Shown: one piece after another, positions 1,430 through 6,867 of the stretch
Numbering within the stretch: position 1 is the stretch's first letter
Layout of the letters: every line of letters begins with the position of its first letter
Sequence record: MZ443771.1
Strand: one strand, 5' to 3'
DNA: 64,000 nt
Program-made: the position numbers and the translations under genes
Notes under the pieces: generated by a model
What the model was told of the DNA's origin: nothing
The model's database searches: none
Seen by the model: only the letters and a program-made list of their open reading frames with translations

Positions 1430-3055
1430 TTACTCTGCTGGCGCAACGTAGGCGTTAGCACCAGTCACGAATGCAATTGCGACTTTCTTAGCAGTGGTCA
1501 GCTCAACGCGCAGGCTGTTAGCGTCGATGAACACGATCTCATCAGGAATGATCTGATAACCGGTGTCGTCAACAACAGTAACGGTACCGTACTTCACGCC
1601 AGCGTTGTGGGTGAAGGTGTGCGCTGTAGCAGCAACATCACCGCTAGCGGTTTTGTCGTACTGGTACAGTTTAGCAGCGGAGCCGCCAGCAGAAGCTGCG
1701 ATTGTATCAACAACGAACTTCTTGCTTACCGCAGAGTTGTCTGTGTAGTCTGCGCTATCACCGGTCAGGGTGATTTCAGCAACAGAGCCACCGGTCGCGT
1801 CGATGAAGCCGCCAGCAGTTTTAACCGCTGCAACGTCAACAGCGATTTTGCTATTGGTAGTGTCCTGTTTCAGGCCATCACCCAGAGCGGCAGCAGCAAT
1901 CTGGTCGTAACCAACGCCACCAGCAGCAATTGCCAGACCATCAACAGAACGTGCCAGAGTAGCGCCGTCCAGTTTCACGCGGGTAGAACCTGCGTTATCT
2001 TCCAGGCCACCAGCAGAATCCAGCTTCGCAGTCACAGCGTTAGAGGTGATCTGAATACCAGCACCAACTTTAACGTTAACTACGTTGCCAGATTTTTCCA
2101 GACCGTCACCGGCGTTGAACTCAGAGGCACCACCGAAGGTAGTCCAAACAGTGCCGTCAAAGCGACGATACTCTTTGATATCTTTGATCCACGTTACAGC
2201 GCCACCAGCTTCGCTGTCAGTCGGGTCAAACACGATCTTGAACGCAGTACCATCGTAGCGCACGATCATGTTATCAACCAGACCGGTGATGCTACCGAAG
2301 TTCGGGTTGATCTGGTCAGCAGCCAGAATCAGGTACTGCTTGCCAGCTACCAGCTCTGGGTCAAGAGTGCCGTCCTGCTGGATAGCGTCAGAGTCGTGCA
2401 GCCAGTCGATGCCAGCAATCGCGTTTTCGATATCGATCTTACGAGCAGCATCGTTCGGGTTAGCTGGAGCAGCCAGGTTAGCAACGGTGTTACCGTTAGC
2501 ATCGAGGTCACCAGACAGTTGGCCGTTAGCCGCGTTCAGCTTGCCGCCCAGAGCAGTTTCGTTTGCGTTAGCTTTGTTGCTAACAGCAGTGATCTGCGAC
2601 TGGATGTTAGAGCTTGCACCGGACAGATAGCCCAGTTCAGCAGCAGTGACGTTTGAGGTTTGCAGTTCGCTGTCAGCGCCCGCGATAACAACGCCGTTCT
2701 CGGTCAGGCCTGTGATTTTGTCTTGCTTGGTAGAAACAACGGTTTCAACGTGTTTCTTAGAAACAGCAGCGTTGTCAGCAGAAGCAGACTGGTCAGGACC
2801 AGACAGTTCGAGGTCAGCGGTCATCGCCACTGTACCGTCTGCGAGGATAACACCCTCTACAGAACCGCCGCCAGTGCCGAACTCTTTGATTACAGTACCG
2901 TCGAAGAATTTGTACTTCTTATCGGTGCTGTTATACCAGATACGCGCTTCTTGTGATGCGACCAGATCGCCAACCAGTGGGTCAGTTGCCAGAACTTCTG
3001 GACGGAAGTTCTTGATCTGTGCGCCTAACATTAAGTCAAGATTACCAGTACGCAT
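1430..3055 (-). CDS. Putative abundant fibre/structural protein
   Basis: Likely start is MRTGNL (AGGAG 7 nt upstream). A/G/T-rich, with coiled-coil and AGDGL-type fibre repeats, a C-terminal HNAG domain and its own terminator. Confidence 0.8.
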   Translation of the reverse strand: MRTGNLDLMLGAQIKNFRPEVLATDPLVGDLVASQEARIWYNSTDKKYKFFDGTVIKEFGTGGGSVEGVILADGTVAMTADLELSGPDQSASADNAAVSKKHVETVVSTKQDKITGLTENGVVIAGADSELQTSNVTAAELGYLSGASSNIQSQITAVSNKANANETALGGKLNAANGQLSGDLDANGNTVANLAAPANPNDAARKIDIENAIAGIDWLHDSDAIQQDGTLDPELVAGKQYLILAADQINPNFGSITGLVDNMIVRYDGTAFKIVFDPTDSEAGGAVTWIKDIKEYRRFDGTVWTTFGGASEFNAGDGLEKSGNVVNVKVGAGIQITSNAVTAKLDSAGGLEDNAGSTRVKLDGATLARSVDGLAIAAGGVGYDQIAAAALGDGLKQDTTNSKIAVDVAAVKTAGGFIDATGGSVAEITLTGDSADYTDNSAVSKKFVVDTIAASAGGSAAKLYQYDKTASGDVAATAHTFTHNAGVKYGTVTVVDDTGYQIIPDEIVFIDANSLRVELTTAKKVAIAFVTGANAYVAPAE

Positions 3056-3079
3056 TGTCATTCTCCTGAGTGCGTGGGA

Positions 3080-3823
3080 TTAGAAGAAGTTACTCTCGCA
3101 GTCATCAAGGCTGCAACGCAGTGCTTGATACGCAGTGATTCGTTCTTCCGTTAGATTGATATACTTATCATCAATATTGTACTTCACTCTGACAGGCACA
3201 TCGTACCCGTCGAGTAGGCCGTGTCGTTGATACACTTCAAGGCGAAGTACCGGTGCGCTGACCTGTCCGTGTTCCATGATGTTCAGGTCAATTTTGTCGG
3301 CGTAGATGAACGGACGCTCTCGCTTACACATGATGTAATCTATCTCATGCAAATTAAAGAGTGTGAAATTCATATAGCCAATAATGAACTCCGCAATCAG
3401 CCTGAATGTCTCCGACATGTCAGACCGAAACTGTTGTGTGAGAATCAGGTCAACGTGCGGTCGTATCGCTACGCGCATGTCATACCAACTCTCACAGAAC
3501 AGCGCTGGGAAGTCTTCCGGGTGATGGGCCATAAGACCCAACACATCGTTTTCCGTATCTGCGAAAGAGCTTAGGATCTCAGTGGCATCCTCATCTGTCT
3601 GAATGCCACAACCAGTTGAAATAAAACGACGCTCAATGTCTCTCAACCAAGACTCTGATGCAGATAGGTATTGAAGCAGTGTTTCTCGTGCGGCAGCCGT
3701 GAACTCATGCCTGTTAGAGTCAAGGACTTCTCCAAGCATAAAGGCTTTCGCTTTGTAGAAATCACTATAGCGTTCGGCAGTAAATCGTCTGAACCCTATG
3801 TTATTCTTCAAATAGCCCATCAT
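3080..3823 (-). CDS. Hypothetical soluble helical protein (247 aa)
   Basis: Long ORF coupled to the upstream stop. No family recognised. Confidence 0.7.
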   Translation of the reverse strand: MMGYLKNNIGFRRFTAERYSDFYKAKAFMLGEVLDSNRHEFTAAARETLLQYLSASESWLRDIERRFISTGCGIQTDEDATEILSSFADTENDVLGLMAHHPEDFPALFCESWYDMRVAIRPHVDLILTQQFRSDMSETFRLIAEFIIGYMNFTLFNLHEIDYIMCKRERPFIYADKIDLNIMEHGQVSAPVLRLEVYQRHGLLDGYDVPVRVKYNIDDKYINLTEERITAYQALRCSLDDCESNFF

Positions 3824-4329
3824 CGCAATGCCCTCAAATCATTCAACTCCGTGTTGCCTTGAGCATTCGGGGTTGTATAAAGAGAACTGGATATGCTCTG
3901 CAATCGCAGACCGAGCTTCTCAAGTTCCTGCTGGTTCCCGCCCAACTTATCAAGCACTTCGCGCATAAGGTCGACTGAGCTTTGATGGTCACGGGACTGC
4001 TGAGAGATGATACGTTCAAAGCGCTGCATCGCACGAAGAACAGAGTTCAAGCCCTCTTTCATATCCAAATTATCGACTGGCGCGGAGTCGGAGATTGCTT
4101 GAATCATCCGCATCATTTGCGCCAAGTCGGCTTGCAGCAGACCATCATCTGGATTGATAGTGGCCGCTGCTGCTTCCAGCTCTGCGTTCCGCGACTTCAA
4201 CTGCTCCAGCTCCTCAAGCTGAGGAAGCAGTTTCAACCAAACGTAGGCACCGCCCGCGATTAGTAGAACAACAGAGAAGACAGTCGCGTAGTTGGACGCA
4301 AGCAACTTGTCTAAAATATCCGCCCACAT
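3820..4329 (-). CDS. Single-pass membrane protein with long helical/coiled-coil C-terminus (holin-, spanin- or receptor-like)
   Basis: TM segment VFSVVLLIAGGAYVWL followed by heptad-rich helices. Likely start is MWADIL. Confidence 0.7.
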   Translation of the reverse strand: MWADILDKLLASNYATVFSVVLLIAGGAYVWLKLLPQLEELEQLKSRNAELEAAAATINPDDGLLQADLAQMMRMIQAISDSAPVDNLDMKEGLNSVLRAMQRFERIISQQSRDHQSSVDLMREVLDKLGGNQQELEKLGLRLQSISSSLYTTPNAQGNTELNDLRALR

Positions 4330-4334
4330 TATAT

Positions 4335-4619
4335 TCAACCCTTACAGGTGTTATCGTTCAGGTCGACGATGACCCGTTCGGCACCTGGTTCGTTTACGTC
4401 AGTGGTTTTGTACGTGTGCGCCATCCGAGGCTTGAACTCTAAGCAGCTTTGCCCGTAACGACCATCGACAACGCAAATGGCCGACAAGCAACTGACATCT
4501 TCCTTGAGAATTAAGTTTTCAGGAGATTGGTTAACACTCCTAACAGCAGTGATCACGAAACCCACCACAGCGAGAGAAATGACAACCACAATGGCAATCC
4601 TAATTCGCTTGGCTTGCAT
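4335..4619 (-). CDS. Small membrane-anchored protein with a 4-Cys exported domain
   Basis: Basic N-terminus (KRIR), hydrophobic helix and four Cys. Preceded by a GCTAATTT motif and GAGG. Confidence 0.7.
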   Translation of the reverse strand: MQAKRIRIAIVVVISLAVVGFVITAVRSVNQSPENLILKEDVSCLSAICVVDGRYGQSCLEFKPRMAHTYKTTDVNEPGAERVIVDLNDNTCKG

Positions 4620-4654
4620 TTCGGTTTCTACCTCATGGTCCTTTTATATGACTG

Positions 4655-4662
4655 AAATTAGC
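4655..4662 (-). promoter_or_regulatory. GCTAATTT putative late promoter
   Basis: Intergenic, 36 nt upstream of ATG 4619. Confidence 0.55.
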
Positions 4663-4683
4663 GAACCACTTGAATAAAGGAGG

Positions 4684-5709
4684 TCATTCCTCCAATACTC
4701 CGCTAATCTCCGAGAACATATTTTTGTACACTAAGGAACCATCTAGCTTGTCCAGTCTATCAACGAGAACATACAGTCTGGGTGACGTGCGGATATTAGC
4801 CCACGTCTTCTCATTACGGTCAAGTCCACCAAGCATCGGGACAATGACTATGCTGAGATTTTTGTTTGCCCTGACAAAGCCTACGTCAATGTGCTTCCTG
4901 TTTATACTTCTGAACAGCCTGTTGATTGCGTCCAAACCCACAGGCCGATTAAATTCCGTATCACTGACTGTATTGACTAAGCTGATGAGTATCCCTTTGT
5001 CCTTACCCTCGATCTCAAACAACGCAGCTTTCAGGTCAGCAACCGTCGAAGCGGAGAAGTATGAAACATCGTGGTTATAGTCCTTGAGACAACTGCCAAG
5101 CGCACGGGCAGATTCGATATGCGCAGCATTGTCATCTCTAAGGATATACACAGGAGCGTCTGCTTGGTAAGTCCGAGCAGTCATGAGATTGATAAGATCA
5201 CAAGAGGGCTTGCCTACTGTGGCTAAGCCCTTATTTGCAATGAAAAACTTATCTTTATACACATCGTAAATGTTTGGTGGCATGTACTTCATGTAATCAT
5301 CGTCCAGACTAAGAATCATTCGAGGCTTAGTTAACTGGACGACGAGTTGCATACTACGAAGCGATGCCCTATATTCCGTATCAGACAGAACTCGACTAAT
5401 CGGAAGGTATTGTACGACAACGAATCGGTCATCAATCGAATCGACAACCGAACGTATGAGCGTACTGCCTAGCGAGGGACCGGCAGAGAATTGGGTAACG
5501 AGCATCAAGCTATCTTCAACTAAGCCTTTAGACTCTGACAGCGTGATACCGTTACCCGTTTGCTTTACCGAACGCTCCCACGTTATTGTGGGGTCGTCTC
5601 GCTGATCGGCATGTACATCAATTGCGCTACACCAGAGACAGGCTCCAAGAATGTAAGCAGCAATACGTTGTCTGGATCTGCTTCTGCCGGGTTGACGGTT
5701 TCCGGCCAT
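4684..5709 (-). CDS. Exported protein resembling periplasmic binding-protein-like sensor domains
   Basis: GGAG SD and a signal peptide (RSRSRQR-IAAYILGACLWCSAI-DVHA). Alternating beta/alpha pattern with a P-x-x-I-L-S-L-D-D motif. Confidence 0.6.
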   Translation of the reverse strand: MAGNRQPGRSRSRQRIAAYILGACLWCSAIDVHADQRDDPTITWERSVKQTGNGITLSESKGLVEDSLMLVTQFSAGPSLGSTLIRSVVDSIDDRFVVVQYLPISRVLSDTEYRASLRSMQLVVQLTKPRMILSLDDDYMKYMPPNIYDVYKDKFFIANKGLATVGKPSCDLINLMTARTYQADAPVYILRDDNAAHIESARALGSCLKDYNHDVSYFSASTVADLKAALFEIEGKDKGILISLVNTVSDTEFNRPVGLDAINRLFRSINRKHIDVGFVRANKNLSIVIVPMLGGLDRNEKTWANIRTSPRLYVLVDRLDKLDGSLVYKNMFSEISGVLEE

Positions 5710-6407
5710 AGGACTTCTCCTCTCTCGTCAGTGACGTAAGGAATGCCTGCCCCTTTGCCCAATCCATGACGCAAAGCCCATACTGTGTCGGCATTCTCTT
5801 GCACAAACACAAGCCCTTTAACCGTTGCCTCGCCAGTCGCGTTTTCCAGTGCAGTGACGCGCGAAGTAAGTAACTGTGCGTCAGACTGAATAGTTCGAAT
5901 CGCAGCGAGGTTCGAGTTAACGCGCTGGTTCATGTTGTTAAACATGGTGAAGAACGAGTTGTTCATCGCCGTGCGAACGCCGTCCGTATAGGACTTAGGA
6001 ATCAGCTCATCGTTGTCAAACGTTGTCACGCCTGTACGAACGAGAACTTTACCGGTAAGACGTCCACCACTTGCGCTGATAATCTGAGGCGCTGGCAAAT
6101 CAGCTTCGTCCCAGACTTGAACAGTGGTCATCACCGTGTTGTAGTCAGTCTCTTCCTGCCACGTATTTTTGTACGGAGCAGTAGCAGTCTTAGACTTACG
6201 GCGCAGAACTTTTTTATAGTTAGCGCTCGTGCCGTCTGCGATAATCCAGAGACCGTTCAGTGGAAAGACATGCGTAACAGGTTCGGCGAACGCTAAGATG
6301 ATCATAACGTCTGCGCTTACCTTGTACACGATATTGTTCGACGCTGACAGACCTTGCTGCTGGGCAAGACTAATCAACGTGTCCACGTAGTTAGTCAACT
6401 GGCTCAT
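5583..6407 (-). CDS. Structural protein with coiled coil and C-terminal HGLG beta domain
   Basis: 274-aa ORF with GGAG SD. C-terminal domain resembles the repeats in 765..1361. Confidence 0.75.
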   Translation of the reverse strand: MSQLTNYVDTLISLAQQQGLSASNNIVYKVSADVMIILAFAEPVTHVFPLNGLWIIADGTSANYKKVLRRKSKTATAPYKNTWQEETDYNTVMTTVQVWDEADLPAPQIISASGGRLTGKVLVRTGVTTFDNDELIPKSYTDGVRTAMNNSFFTMFNNMNQRVNSNLAAIRTIQSDAQLLTSRVTALENATGEATVKGLVFVQENADTVWALRHGLGKGAGIPYVTDERGEVLWPETVNPAEADPDNVLLLTFLEPVSGVAQLMYMPISETTPQ

Positions 6408-6867
6408 CCGAGACTCCTAACGTTTTAAGAAGGGTAGAACTTGAATCGGAGAAGGCCTTAGCAATAAGTTTGGCAGCAGCCTTATCGACGACGAGAGTGC
6501 TGATACGCCCTTTTGTATTGCACACGATAGTCTGTGGCGAATACTGCGCGAGAGCAAGGGCGAATAGCAGATGATTACCCAAGTCACCAGAGATACTCAC
6601 TTCAACGTCCAGTTCAGGCACGTAGACATTCTGGTTAATTGTGGCAACAAACTGCGCCAGCACTTCCGGGTCGTGCTCAGGAGGCGCTGTATCATATCCT
6701 GCTACAAGATCAATCTGACCAGTAGCAGGGTCGTATGCGAAAGCTGATGGGTCACCGAGGATGCGACTGAATAGCTCGTCACTTACCTCGATGCAGTCAT
6801 CGTCTGTCTTCTCACGCACACGGCCGACAATCGAGTTATCGGCACGGTTGATTCTGATAATCGGCAT
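6391..6867 (-). CDS. Hypothetical protein, possible fibre assembly chaperone
   Basis: Likely start is MPIIRI. Lies directly downstream of a collagen fibre gene. Confidence 0.65.
   Translation of the reverse strand: MPIIRINRADNSIVGRVREKTDDDCIEVSDELFSRILGDPSAFAYDPATGQIDLVAGYDTAPPEHDPEVLAQFVATINQNVYVPELDVEVSISGDLGNHLLFALALAQYSPQTIVCNTKGRISTLVVDKAAAKLIAKAFSDSSSTLLKTLGVSDEPVD

Follow-up and report, generated by a model that had tools for sequence, protein, structure and literature searches.

Four closely spaced, co-oriented genes, here termed A, B, C, and D, lie on the minus strand of a 64,000-nucleotide (nt) stretch of sequence record MZ443771.1 (the window), and we tentatively favor the reading that they form a module that spans the envelope, is not part of the virion, helps to control host lysis, and receives an input from the periplasm. 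Lysis control was judged the most likely function because the C-D pair adjoins lysis genes in other phage groups. Three features are new: an orphan exported protein with the predicted fold of a periplasmic binding protein (A), a widespread gene pair (C-D) of which one product, D, has a modeled fold without a match, and the recurrent placement of this pair in lysis cassettes. The original prediction, which placed a four-gene envelope module at positions 3080 to 5709, holds in that all four open reading frames (ORFs) are present there (Table 1) and are conserved at the protein level.

Gene layout and conservation of the module

Over positions 3000 to 6500, the window matches Erwinia phage pEa_SNUABM_20 at 100% identity and pEa_SNUABM_3 at 99.8%, both of which are Alexandraviruses of about 266 kb with Erwinia amylovora as host. 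Genome-wide context was taken from the record of the latter phage (SNUABM_3), in which 87% of the words sampled from the window recur; the lysis genes of the window's phage are inferred from this relative rather than seen directly. A, B, C, and D sit within one long late operon, all of it co-directional. A gap of 64 nt separates A from B and one of 5 nt separates B from C when C starts at the ATG at 4329, while the stop codon of C and the start codon of D overlap in the tetranucleotide ATGA. A scan of the module for promoters and terminators gave no signal above chance counts. At the stop codon of A (4679-4693, minus strand), there is a 5-bp GGAGG/CCTCC hairpin with TTTATT after it, which is not significant against chance.

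A to D are real genes rather than chance ORFs, since the protein sequence of each is conserved across phages that range from Alexandravirus through Yoloswagvirus, Salmondvirus, PaBG, and Lu11 to metagenomic phages of about 310 kb. The papers describing PaBG and the Dickeya phage list the module genes as hypothetical. With D as the query, 40 viral loci from several genera, on contigs of about 250 to 315 kb, were collected from IMG/VR. All but one of these (39/40) share one gene order, with A (including its signal peptide) followed by B, C, and D, and the same fiber-like gene comes next in all 39 inspected. The full-set loci cover Alexandra-, Yoloswag-, JA-, PaBG-, and ~310-kb-type phages, and intact A-B-C-D was also found in Lu11 and at two further loci (L054 and L058). 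Synteny in relatives, which had been proposed as a check, shows the four genes to be co-conserved.

The D family is larger than the set of full modules, and a full search with a hidden Markov model (HMM) gave 253 clusters at 50% identity; among the 150 clusters listed, most proteins are 220 to 300 amino acids (aa) long and a few are shorter. At every locus inspected except those of RsoM2USA-like phages, D is preceded by a C-type gene of 123 to 184 aa, with the two frames overlapping or nearly abutting. Loci with C-D and no A-B keep the order C to D, with a 1- to 11-nt overlap or adjoining frames in five of six and a 5-nt gap in the sixth (L064). Because the D family is large, a C-type partner is found nearly everywhere, and the C subfamilies match by profile, these sequence comparisons indicate that C-D is an old core, ancient and widespread in large phages, and that A-B is an addition specific to one large lineage.

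Two records, those of Salmonella phage Sen-NF (108 kb, L050) and Alcaligenes phage Afa-NA1 (78 kb, L061), carry the jumbo-phage fiber region studied here. The coding sequences of Sen-NF are set end to end without gaps, and Afa-NA1 lacks A, B, and C. These "complete genomes" look like partial or chimeric assemblies, and both were set aside from the comparison as probable partial or odd assemblies. Several fiber-type proteins of the cluster (1430-3061 and 765-1403 of the window and homologs in L020 to L046) have in common an N-terminal motif, …GNL.L.G…KN(F/L)…P…DP, which is probably a common attachment module.

Table 1. Features of the window and gene orders around C-D at other loci (L numbers and phage names identify the loci compared; positions in L loci are those of the locus)
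Feature	Positions	Strand	Description
Gene A	4684..5709	minus	341 aa; exported; type I periplasmic-binding-protein fold (predicted); PHROG 31505 (function unknown)
Signal peptide of A	5608..5709	minus	about residues 1-34; inside the overlap with the upstream gene
Overlap of A start and upstream fiber-like gene	5583..5709	minus	127 nt; two reading frames used
Gene B	4335..4619	minus	94 aa; bitopic; four-Cys tail
Gene C	3820..4329	minus	169 aa from ATG 4329; single-pass; PHROG 31730/28931
C, longer ORF from TTG	3820..4338	minus	less likely start
Gene D	3080..3823	minus	247 aa; soluble; PHROG 19088
Upstream flank, 274-aa fiber-like protein	5583..6407	minus	matches tail-protein PHROGs; RefSeq label "HNH endonuclease"
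Downstream flank, 543-aa virion structural (fiber-like) protein	1430..3061	minus	comes after D
L036			GH108 endolysin, holin, C, D; then portal gene
L060			C, D, x, M15 peptidase
L063, L064			C, D, x, i-spanin, o-spanin (PF26831), GH19 endolysin
pv27			C, D, array of small paralogs, GH19 endolysin
Lu11, L027, L037			A-B-C-D, one fiber gene, transmembrane protein, two-transmembrane protein, u-spanin-like lipoprotein, M15 endolysin
PEEF(L/I)-type single copy, L060	2204-2437
PEEF(L/I)-type single copy, L063	6976-7290
PEEF(L/I)-type single copy, L064	2027-2311
PEEF(L/I)-type single copy, L065	1821-2201

Predicted structure and topology of the four proteins

The four proteins had been described beforehand as an exported 341-aa protein with a signal peptide, a possible LGAC lipobox, and a pattern resembling the binding-protein-like sensor domains of some histidine kinases and diguanylate cyclases, with no output domain attached; a 94-aa membrane-anchored protein with four cysteines; a single-pass protein with a probably cytoplasmic helical tail; and a coupled soluble protein of 247 aa. 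Apart from the lipobox, which is confined to some groups, the results below agree with each element of this description. Family scans of A to D in Pfam, PHROGs, NCBIfam, and PADLOC returned only PHROGs of unknown function, and B matched no family in any of the four.

Most GenBank and RefSeq records start A at Met69, giving a protein of 273 aa and losing the signal peptide from the annotation; the match to PHROG 31505 likewise spans residues 69 to 341 only. The upstream ATG at 5709 is preceded by the Shine-Dalgarno sequence GAGAGGAG, whereas none precedes Met69, and when the 341-aa protein was used in tblastn searches, alignments to relatives with as little as 39% identity began at residue 1. 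The signal peptide consists of an Arg-rich n-region, the hydrophobic core IAAYILGACLWCSAI, and a VHA|D site, and the n-region, the hydrophobic stretch, and the small-x-Ala site are kept in 24 of 24 aligned lineages, as read from the alignment. In PaBG-like phages, A does not overlap the upstream gene and the signal peptide is still present. Given the Shine-Dalgarno sequence at the upstream ATG, the alignments from residue 1, and a signal peptide in every lineage, we conclude that the 341-aa reading is correct and that the Met69 annotations are wrong. The LGAC lipobox occurs in the Alexandra, Yoloswag, and JA groups but not in the PaBG, Lu11, and 310-kb groups. Since a site of the signal peptidase I type is universal and the lipobox is group restricted, A is more likely to be a soluble periplasmic protein than a lipoprotein, to judge from these motifs.

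An AlphaFold2 model of A, built from 24 diverse homologs, folds into two alpha/beta lobes with a predicted local distance difference test score (pLDDT) of 73 overall and above 85 for most of residues 170 to 290; in Alexandravirus A, a low-confidence linker of about 30 residues follows the signal peptide. Foldseek searches of the PDB with this model returned 55 matches at E ≤ 1e-3, and the top 50 listed were nearly all periplasmic binding proteins, LacI-family proteins, and Venus-flytrap domains, along with two aspartate transcarbamoylases. In VIA comparisons, the four best matches were 3lft, 3lkv, 6hni, and 6hnj (Z of 15.6, 14.9, 14.7, and 14.0, respectively; next match, 12.4), and alignment to 3lft_B covered 238 residues with a root mean square deviation of 4.5 (Z of 15.6). 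We take these four structures to be the solved members of PF04392 (ABC_sub_bind), and the nearest clusters in the ESM Atlas carry PF04392. Identity to the top structural matches is 7 to 10%. A Pfam scan of A gave no match, 24 homologs scanned at E up to 10 gave neither PF04392 nor any other Pfam family, and a profile search against PDB sequences returned nothing meaningful. The model is therefore best described as a type I periplasmic-binding-protein fold that is closest to PF04392 proteins and that falls outside this family at the level of sequence. No genes for an ABC permease or ATPase adjoin A, the neighbors being B, C, D, and fiber genes in every locus inspected. The invariant residues G81, Y188, G239, D250, H273, and P291 and a conserved Gln near position 73 map mostly to strand ends of the model, and our guess is that the conserved polar residues line the cleft between the lobes.

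B has an N-terminal membrane anchor (residues 8 to 25) with Lys and Arg on its N side, followed by a tail of about 65 aa in which C44, C49, C59, and C92 are invariant in 12 lineages. The tail is predicted to be periplasmic and is probably a disulfide-bonded domain, as this charge distribution and the cysteines suggest. In Lu11, the four-Cys homolog of B (L056, about 5230-5480) is unannotated.

For C, the ATG at 4329 is the more likely start, as the same start is annotated in relatives. The protein begins with a short acidic N terminus, and its transmembrane segment (about residues 15 to 32) is followed by an invariant Pro36 and a long helical tail; a C-terminal R-x-L is also conserved. All 12 lineages have zero or one Lys or Arg before the transmembrane segment and two to five in the 20 residues after it, a bias that under the positive-inside rule predicts an N-out/C-in topology with the helical tail in the cytoplasm. 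Profile-profile comparison of C with the C-like genes of pv27-type phages gave a probability of 86% (E of 5.5e-6) over the transmembrane and proline segment only, evidence that within this segment the C genes of both main subfamilies are homologous. The C-like gene of the ~350-kb phages matched C with a profile probability of 31% and, homology being weak, was treated as an architectural resemblance only.

D is predicted with high confidence (AlphaFold2 pLDDT of 92; predicted TM-score of 0.89) to consist of five long helices and a small alpha/beta C-terminal domain, and it carries an invariant N-terminal motif, NNIxFR. Foldseek found no fold match in the PDB (E > 0.3), and a wide VIA search gave a best Z of 8.2 (GldM/PorM and dynamin-stalk helices), which is below the noise level quoted for helical proteins. 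The BFVD contains four uncharacterized viral relatives with TM-scores of 0.71 to 0.85; the ESM Atlas gave no usable match, and a profile search against PDB sequences gave nothing meaningful. No nucleic-acid-binding fold or motif was found by Pfam, PDB profile, or fold searches. The modeled fold of D is thus novel, without a match among solved structures. Two candidate identities were considered for D and rejected. The name "ABC transporter," attached to PHROG 19088 and used in RefSeq, is unsupported in Pfam, NCBIfam, and fold searches, and an assignment as PspA/ESCRT-III-like was dropped for want of such a fold match. Taken together, the predicted topologies of A to D support an arrangement of the module that runs from the periplasm through the membrane to the cytoplasm. 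The original reading of the set as a transmembrane relay (ligand binder, anchor, transducer, and effector) that would control lysis or superinfection is supported in part.

Lysis-gene neighborhoods and alternative explanations

Lysis genes stand no more than two genes away from C-D in several lineages, and the endolysins concerned are of three unrelated types (Table 1). Because the endolysin type varies while the adjacency stays, we favor a functional tie between C-D and lysis. Homologs of C are small membrane proteins in the lysis cassettes of L036, L063, and L064, and in L063 and L064 C is the sole non-spanin membrane protein of the cassette; in the window, C belongs to a fiber operon. Parts of the downstream set of the Lu11 type recur elsewhere, with the transmembrane and two-transmembrane proteins in L044 and the lipoprotein in L042 and L054. 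The membrane proteins and lipoprotein of the Lu11, L027, and L037 cassettes are homologs of candidate lysis genes in SNUABM_3, which occupy the far end of the leftward late operon to which the module also belongs, about 15 kb past the left end of the window (L047, 47192-48273). These candidates comprise a lipoprotein with a lipobox and a C-terminal transmembrane segment (the outline of a single-chain spanin), a 98-aa anchored protein, and a 102-aa holin-like protein with two transmembrane segments, and from their sequences they form a probable lysis cassette. The GH108-type endolysin of SNUABM_3 (L049, 42273-42845) is encoded about 100 kb away.

Several side observations concern these neighborhoods. 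Small soluble proteins that end in a PEEF(L/I)-like motif are encoded in one copy after D in several phages (Table 1), and about 10 tandem copies occur between D and the GH19 endolysin of the Vibrio phage pv27 (L057, 6852-10205). In the lineage with spanins and a GH19 endolysin, the gene before C encodes a VWA-type DUF2201 protein that is conserved in three contigs (L063, 4469-5575; L064, 1-660; L065, 1-462), and C-D may have an additional partner in this protein. The spanin-like lipoprotein gene of Lu11 (L056, 8812-9075) is annotated apparently from an internal start, so that the lipoprotein signal is lost.

In the mechanism that we propose, the C-D pair would form the core. C would reside in the inner membrane with a very short periplasmic N terminus and a long cytoplasmic coiled coil, and D, a helical-bundle protein of the cytoplasm, would be synthesized together with C by translational coupling. 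The periplasmic parts A and B would have been added upstream of this pair in the lineages of PaBG, Lu11, and Alexandra. A, exported by the Sec pathway and possibly held at the membrane by B, would report a periplasmic condition or ligand to C across the membrane, and C and D would set or delay membrane permeabilization, either as a holin-like or antiholin-like element or by regulating a separate holin candidate. The physical contacts and the direction of signaling in this scheme, like the role in lysis itself, are part of the proposal. A bolder version, which we regard as doubtful, is that C-D represents an unrecognized, widespread class of lysis control composed of an N-out/C-in holin-like protein and a new-fold cytoplasmic partner, and that the PaBG, Lu11, and Alexandra jumbo phages captured A as a periplasmic sensor and B as a disulfide-rich adaptor, so that lysis timing would be gated by a ligand or by the state of the envelope. 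If true, lysis timing would answer a small molecule or envelope state in the periplasm, making the module a ligand-gated lysis clock.

Several observations weigh against a role in lysis control. A to D show no similarity to T4 RI, RIII, or T or to any annotated lysis family in Pfam, PHROGs, NCBIfam, or PADLOC; the lysis link drawn in the original prediction takes its support from the position of C-D in or beside the lysis cassettes of several other lineages. In SNUABM_3, the module lies about 17 kb from the spanin- and holin-like genes and about 100 kb from the endolysin gene, and no lysis gene is found near the module in PaBG. The adjacency of C-D to lysis genes could be partly positional, as lysis cassettes often adjoin tail-fiber genes at operon ends, and the lysis-adjacent cases without A-B all belong to a single subfamily of D, so that their independence may be incomplete. 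The homology of C between subfamilies rests on a match of 32 columns, and RsoM2USA-like phages (about 350 kb) have D before the C-like gene, at the end of a replication-type operon. The non-virion status of the module also bears on this question. PaBG_00257, the homolog of the downstream flanking protein, was identified in purified PaBG virions by mass spectrometry (PMC7412058). That proteome comprises 14 abundant proteins, among them the product of the gene after D and none of A to D, and is uninformative for low-copy proteins; it is too shallow to exclude A to D from virions.

The location of the module is also relevant to an alternative that we consider unlikely, in which C-D tethers a step of fiber ("hairs") or baseplate assembly to the inner membrane, with A-B as accessories and none, or only traces, of the proteins in the virion. 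Fiber-type genes always flank the module in the lineages of PaBG, Alexandra, and Lu11, with the same fiber-like virion protein encoded next, and at another locus (L059) a fiber-like coiled-coil protein is encoded two genes after D. However, virions assemble in the cytoplasm, which leaves a Sec-exported protein resembling periplasmic binding proteins and a disulfide-type periplasmic domain without an obvious role, and C-D also occurs far from fiber genes, beside endolysins, spanins, a tRNA nucleotidyltransferase, and replication genes.

Superinfection exclusion or envelope protection, in which an entry apparatus is blocked or a receptor masked late in infection, appears quite unlikely. Precedents are T4 Imm and Sp and T5 Llp. 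The predicted periplasmic and inner-membrane locations would suit such a function, as would the position beside receptor-binding fiber genes, since T5 llp also lies beside its receptor-binding gene; B resembles T4 Sp in size and layout, with no homology found. Exclusion genes are, however, usually early and variable, whereas the module is deeply conserved and sits in a late structural operon, and no PADLOC or PHROG match to exclusion proteins was obtained. A conserved 247-aa cytoplasmic partner and the adjacency of C-D to endolysins would also be left unexplained.

It is very unlikely that A to D are themselves canonical lysis effectors, that is, a holin, an antiholin, and a two-part spanin, the alternative raised in the original prediction. 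C has the outline of an i-spanin, with an N-terminal transmembrane segment and a coiled coil, and L063 and L064 offer no other holin candidate. Nevertheless, no lipobox ORF was found in or adjoining C or D in the window's ORF list (the only same-strand ORF of at least 50 aa within C, at 3843-4034, lacks a lipobox, and there is none within D), so no lipoprotein partner gene adjoins C, and the charge bias predicts a cytoplasmic tail for C, the reverse of an i-spanin. L063 and L064 have i- and o-spanins of their own. Since SNUABM_3 has its own u-spanin-like lipoprotein, two-transmembrane holin-like protein, and GH108-type endolysin elsewhere, we do not regard the module as the spanin/holin set itself. 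The spanin part of that alternative is thus unlikely; C may have a holin-like or antiholin-like role. A membrane anchor for phage DNA replication or packaging of the phi29 p16.7 type (N-terminal transmembrane segment, coiled coil, and cytoplasmic effector), with D as the cytoplasmic effector, is highly improbable: D and the C-like gene do come last in the operon of RsoM2USA-like ~350-kb phages that includes a DnaB-type helicase, a PD-(D/E)XK nuclease, and an ATP-grasp ligase, and in L036 the pair precedes the portal gene, but D showed no nucleic-acid-binding fold or motif in the searches above, most C-D contexts are late, lysis, or fiber regions, and A-B would be left unexplained. What probability remains belongs to explanations that we have not thought of.

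Little is understood of how jumbo phages time lysis, and most of their lysis genes lack annotation. If C-D does control lysis, more than 250 clusters labeled "hypothetical," "membrane protein," or, wrongly, "ABC transporter" would gain a testable role. An exported binding-protein-fold protein connected to C-D would offer a rare example of a ligand-binding domain through which a phage senses the periplasm. Such sensing would bear on lysis inhibition, burst size, and biocontrol with Erwinia and Dickeya jumbo phages. Regardless of function, several annotations can be corrected: the start codon of A should be reset in most records so that the signal peptide is included, B should be added in Lu11, and the names "ABC transporter" for D and "HNH endonuclease" for the fiber-like protein should be dropped.

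Comparison with known systems

Large phages carry genes for exported or membrane proteins other than the canonical ones for entry and lysis, and the module fits this general theme. A preprint of October 2026 describes sortase B, PspA, and outer-membrane barrels as envelope proteins of huge phages, as well as ABC transporters that are complete, substrate-binding protein included, and lie near phage PspA; a term search of the preprint turned up nothing like A-B-C-D (bioRxiv 10.64898/2026.10.24.761521). Compared with the PspA-linked transporters described there, A is an orphan binding protein without a transporter, and D has no PspA-like match.

The likeness of A to PF04392 proteins (3lft, 3lkv, and 6hni/6hnj, the last two being CD0873) lies in structural matches with Z of 14.0 to 15.6 over about 240 residues, in export, and in the two alpha/beta lobes of its model. 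It differs from them in having no HMM match and no transporter genes nearby, with B, C, and D as partners instead.

Spanins are known as two-part systems, such as lambda Rz/Rz1, and as single chains, such as T1 gp11. C is like the i-spanins of the former type in its N-terminal transmembrane segment and coiled coil, its size (about 130 to 180 aa), and its occurrence in lysis cassettes. It is unlike them in that its orientation is predicted to be reversed, it has no lipoprotein partner, and genomes with C-D carry spanins of their own.

The closest functional parallel may be lysis inhibition in T4, where the holin T and the antiholins RI (periplasmic) and RIII (cytoplasmic) convert a periplasmic cue into a change in lysis timing. 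In both systems, as predicted for A to D, a membrane protein that crosses the inner membrane once has a periplasmic and a cytoplasmic partner, and the T4 holin gene t directly follows tail-fiber genes, while C-D occurs in the lysis cassettes of other phages. A to D have no Pfam, PHROG, or NCBIfam match to RI, RIII, or T, a comparison made by sequence families. The large domain of T is periplasmic, whereas that of C is predicted to be cytoplasmic; RI is small with a releasable signal-anchor, whereas A is a binding-protein fold of about 300 aa; and T4 has no counterpart of B. Overall, the module is plausibly, though by no means securely, a functional analog of T4 T/RIII/RI that is unrelated to it in sequence and opposite to it in predicted membrane orientation.

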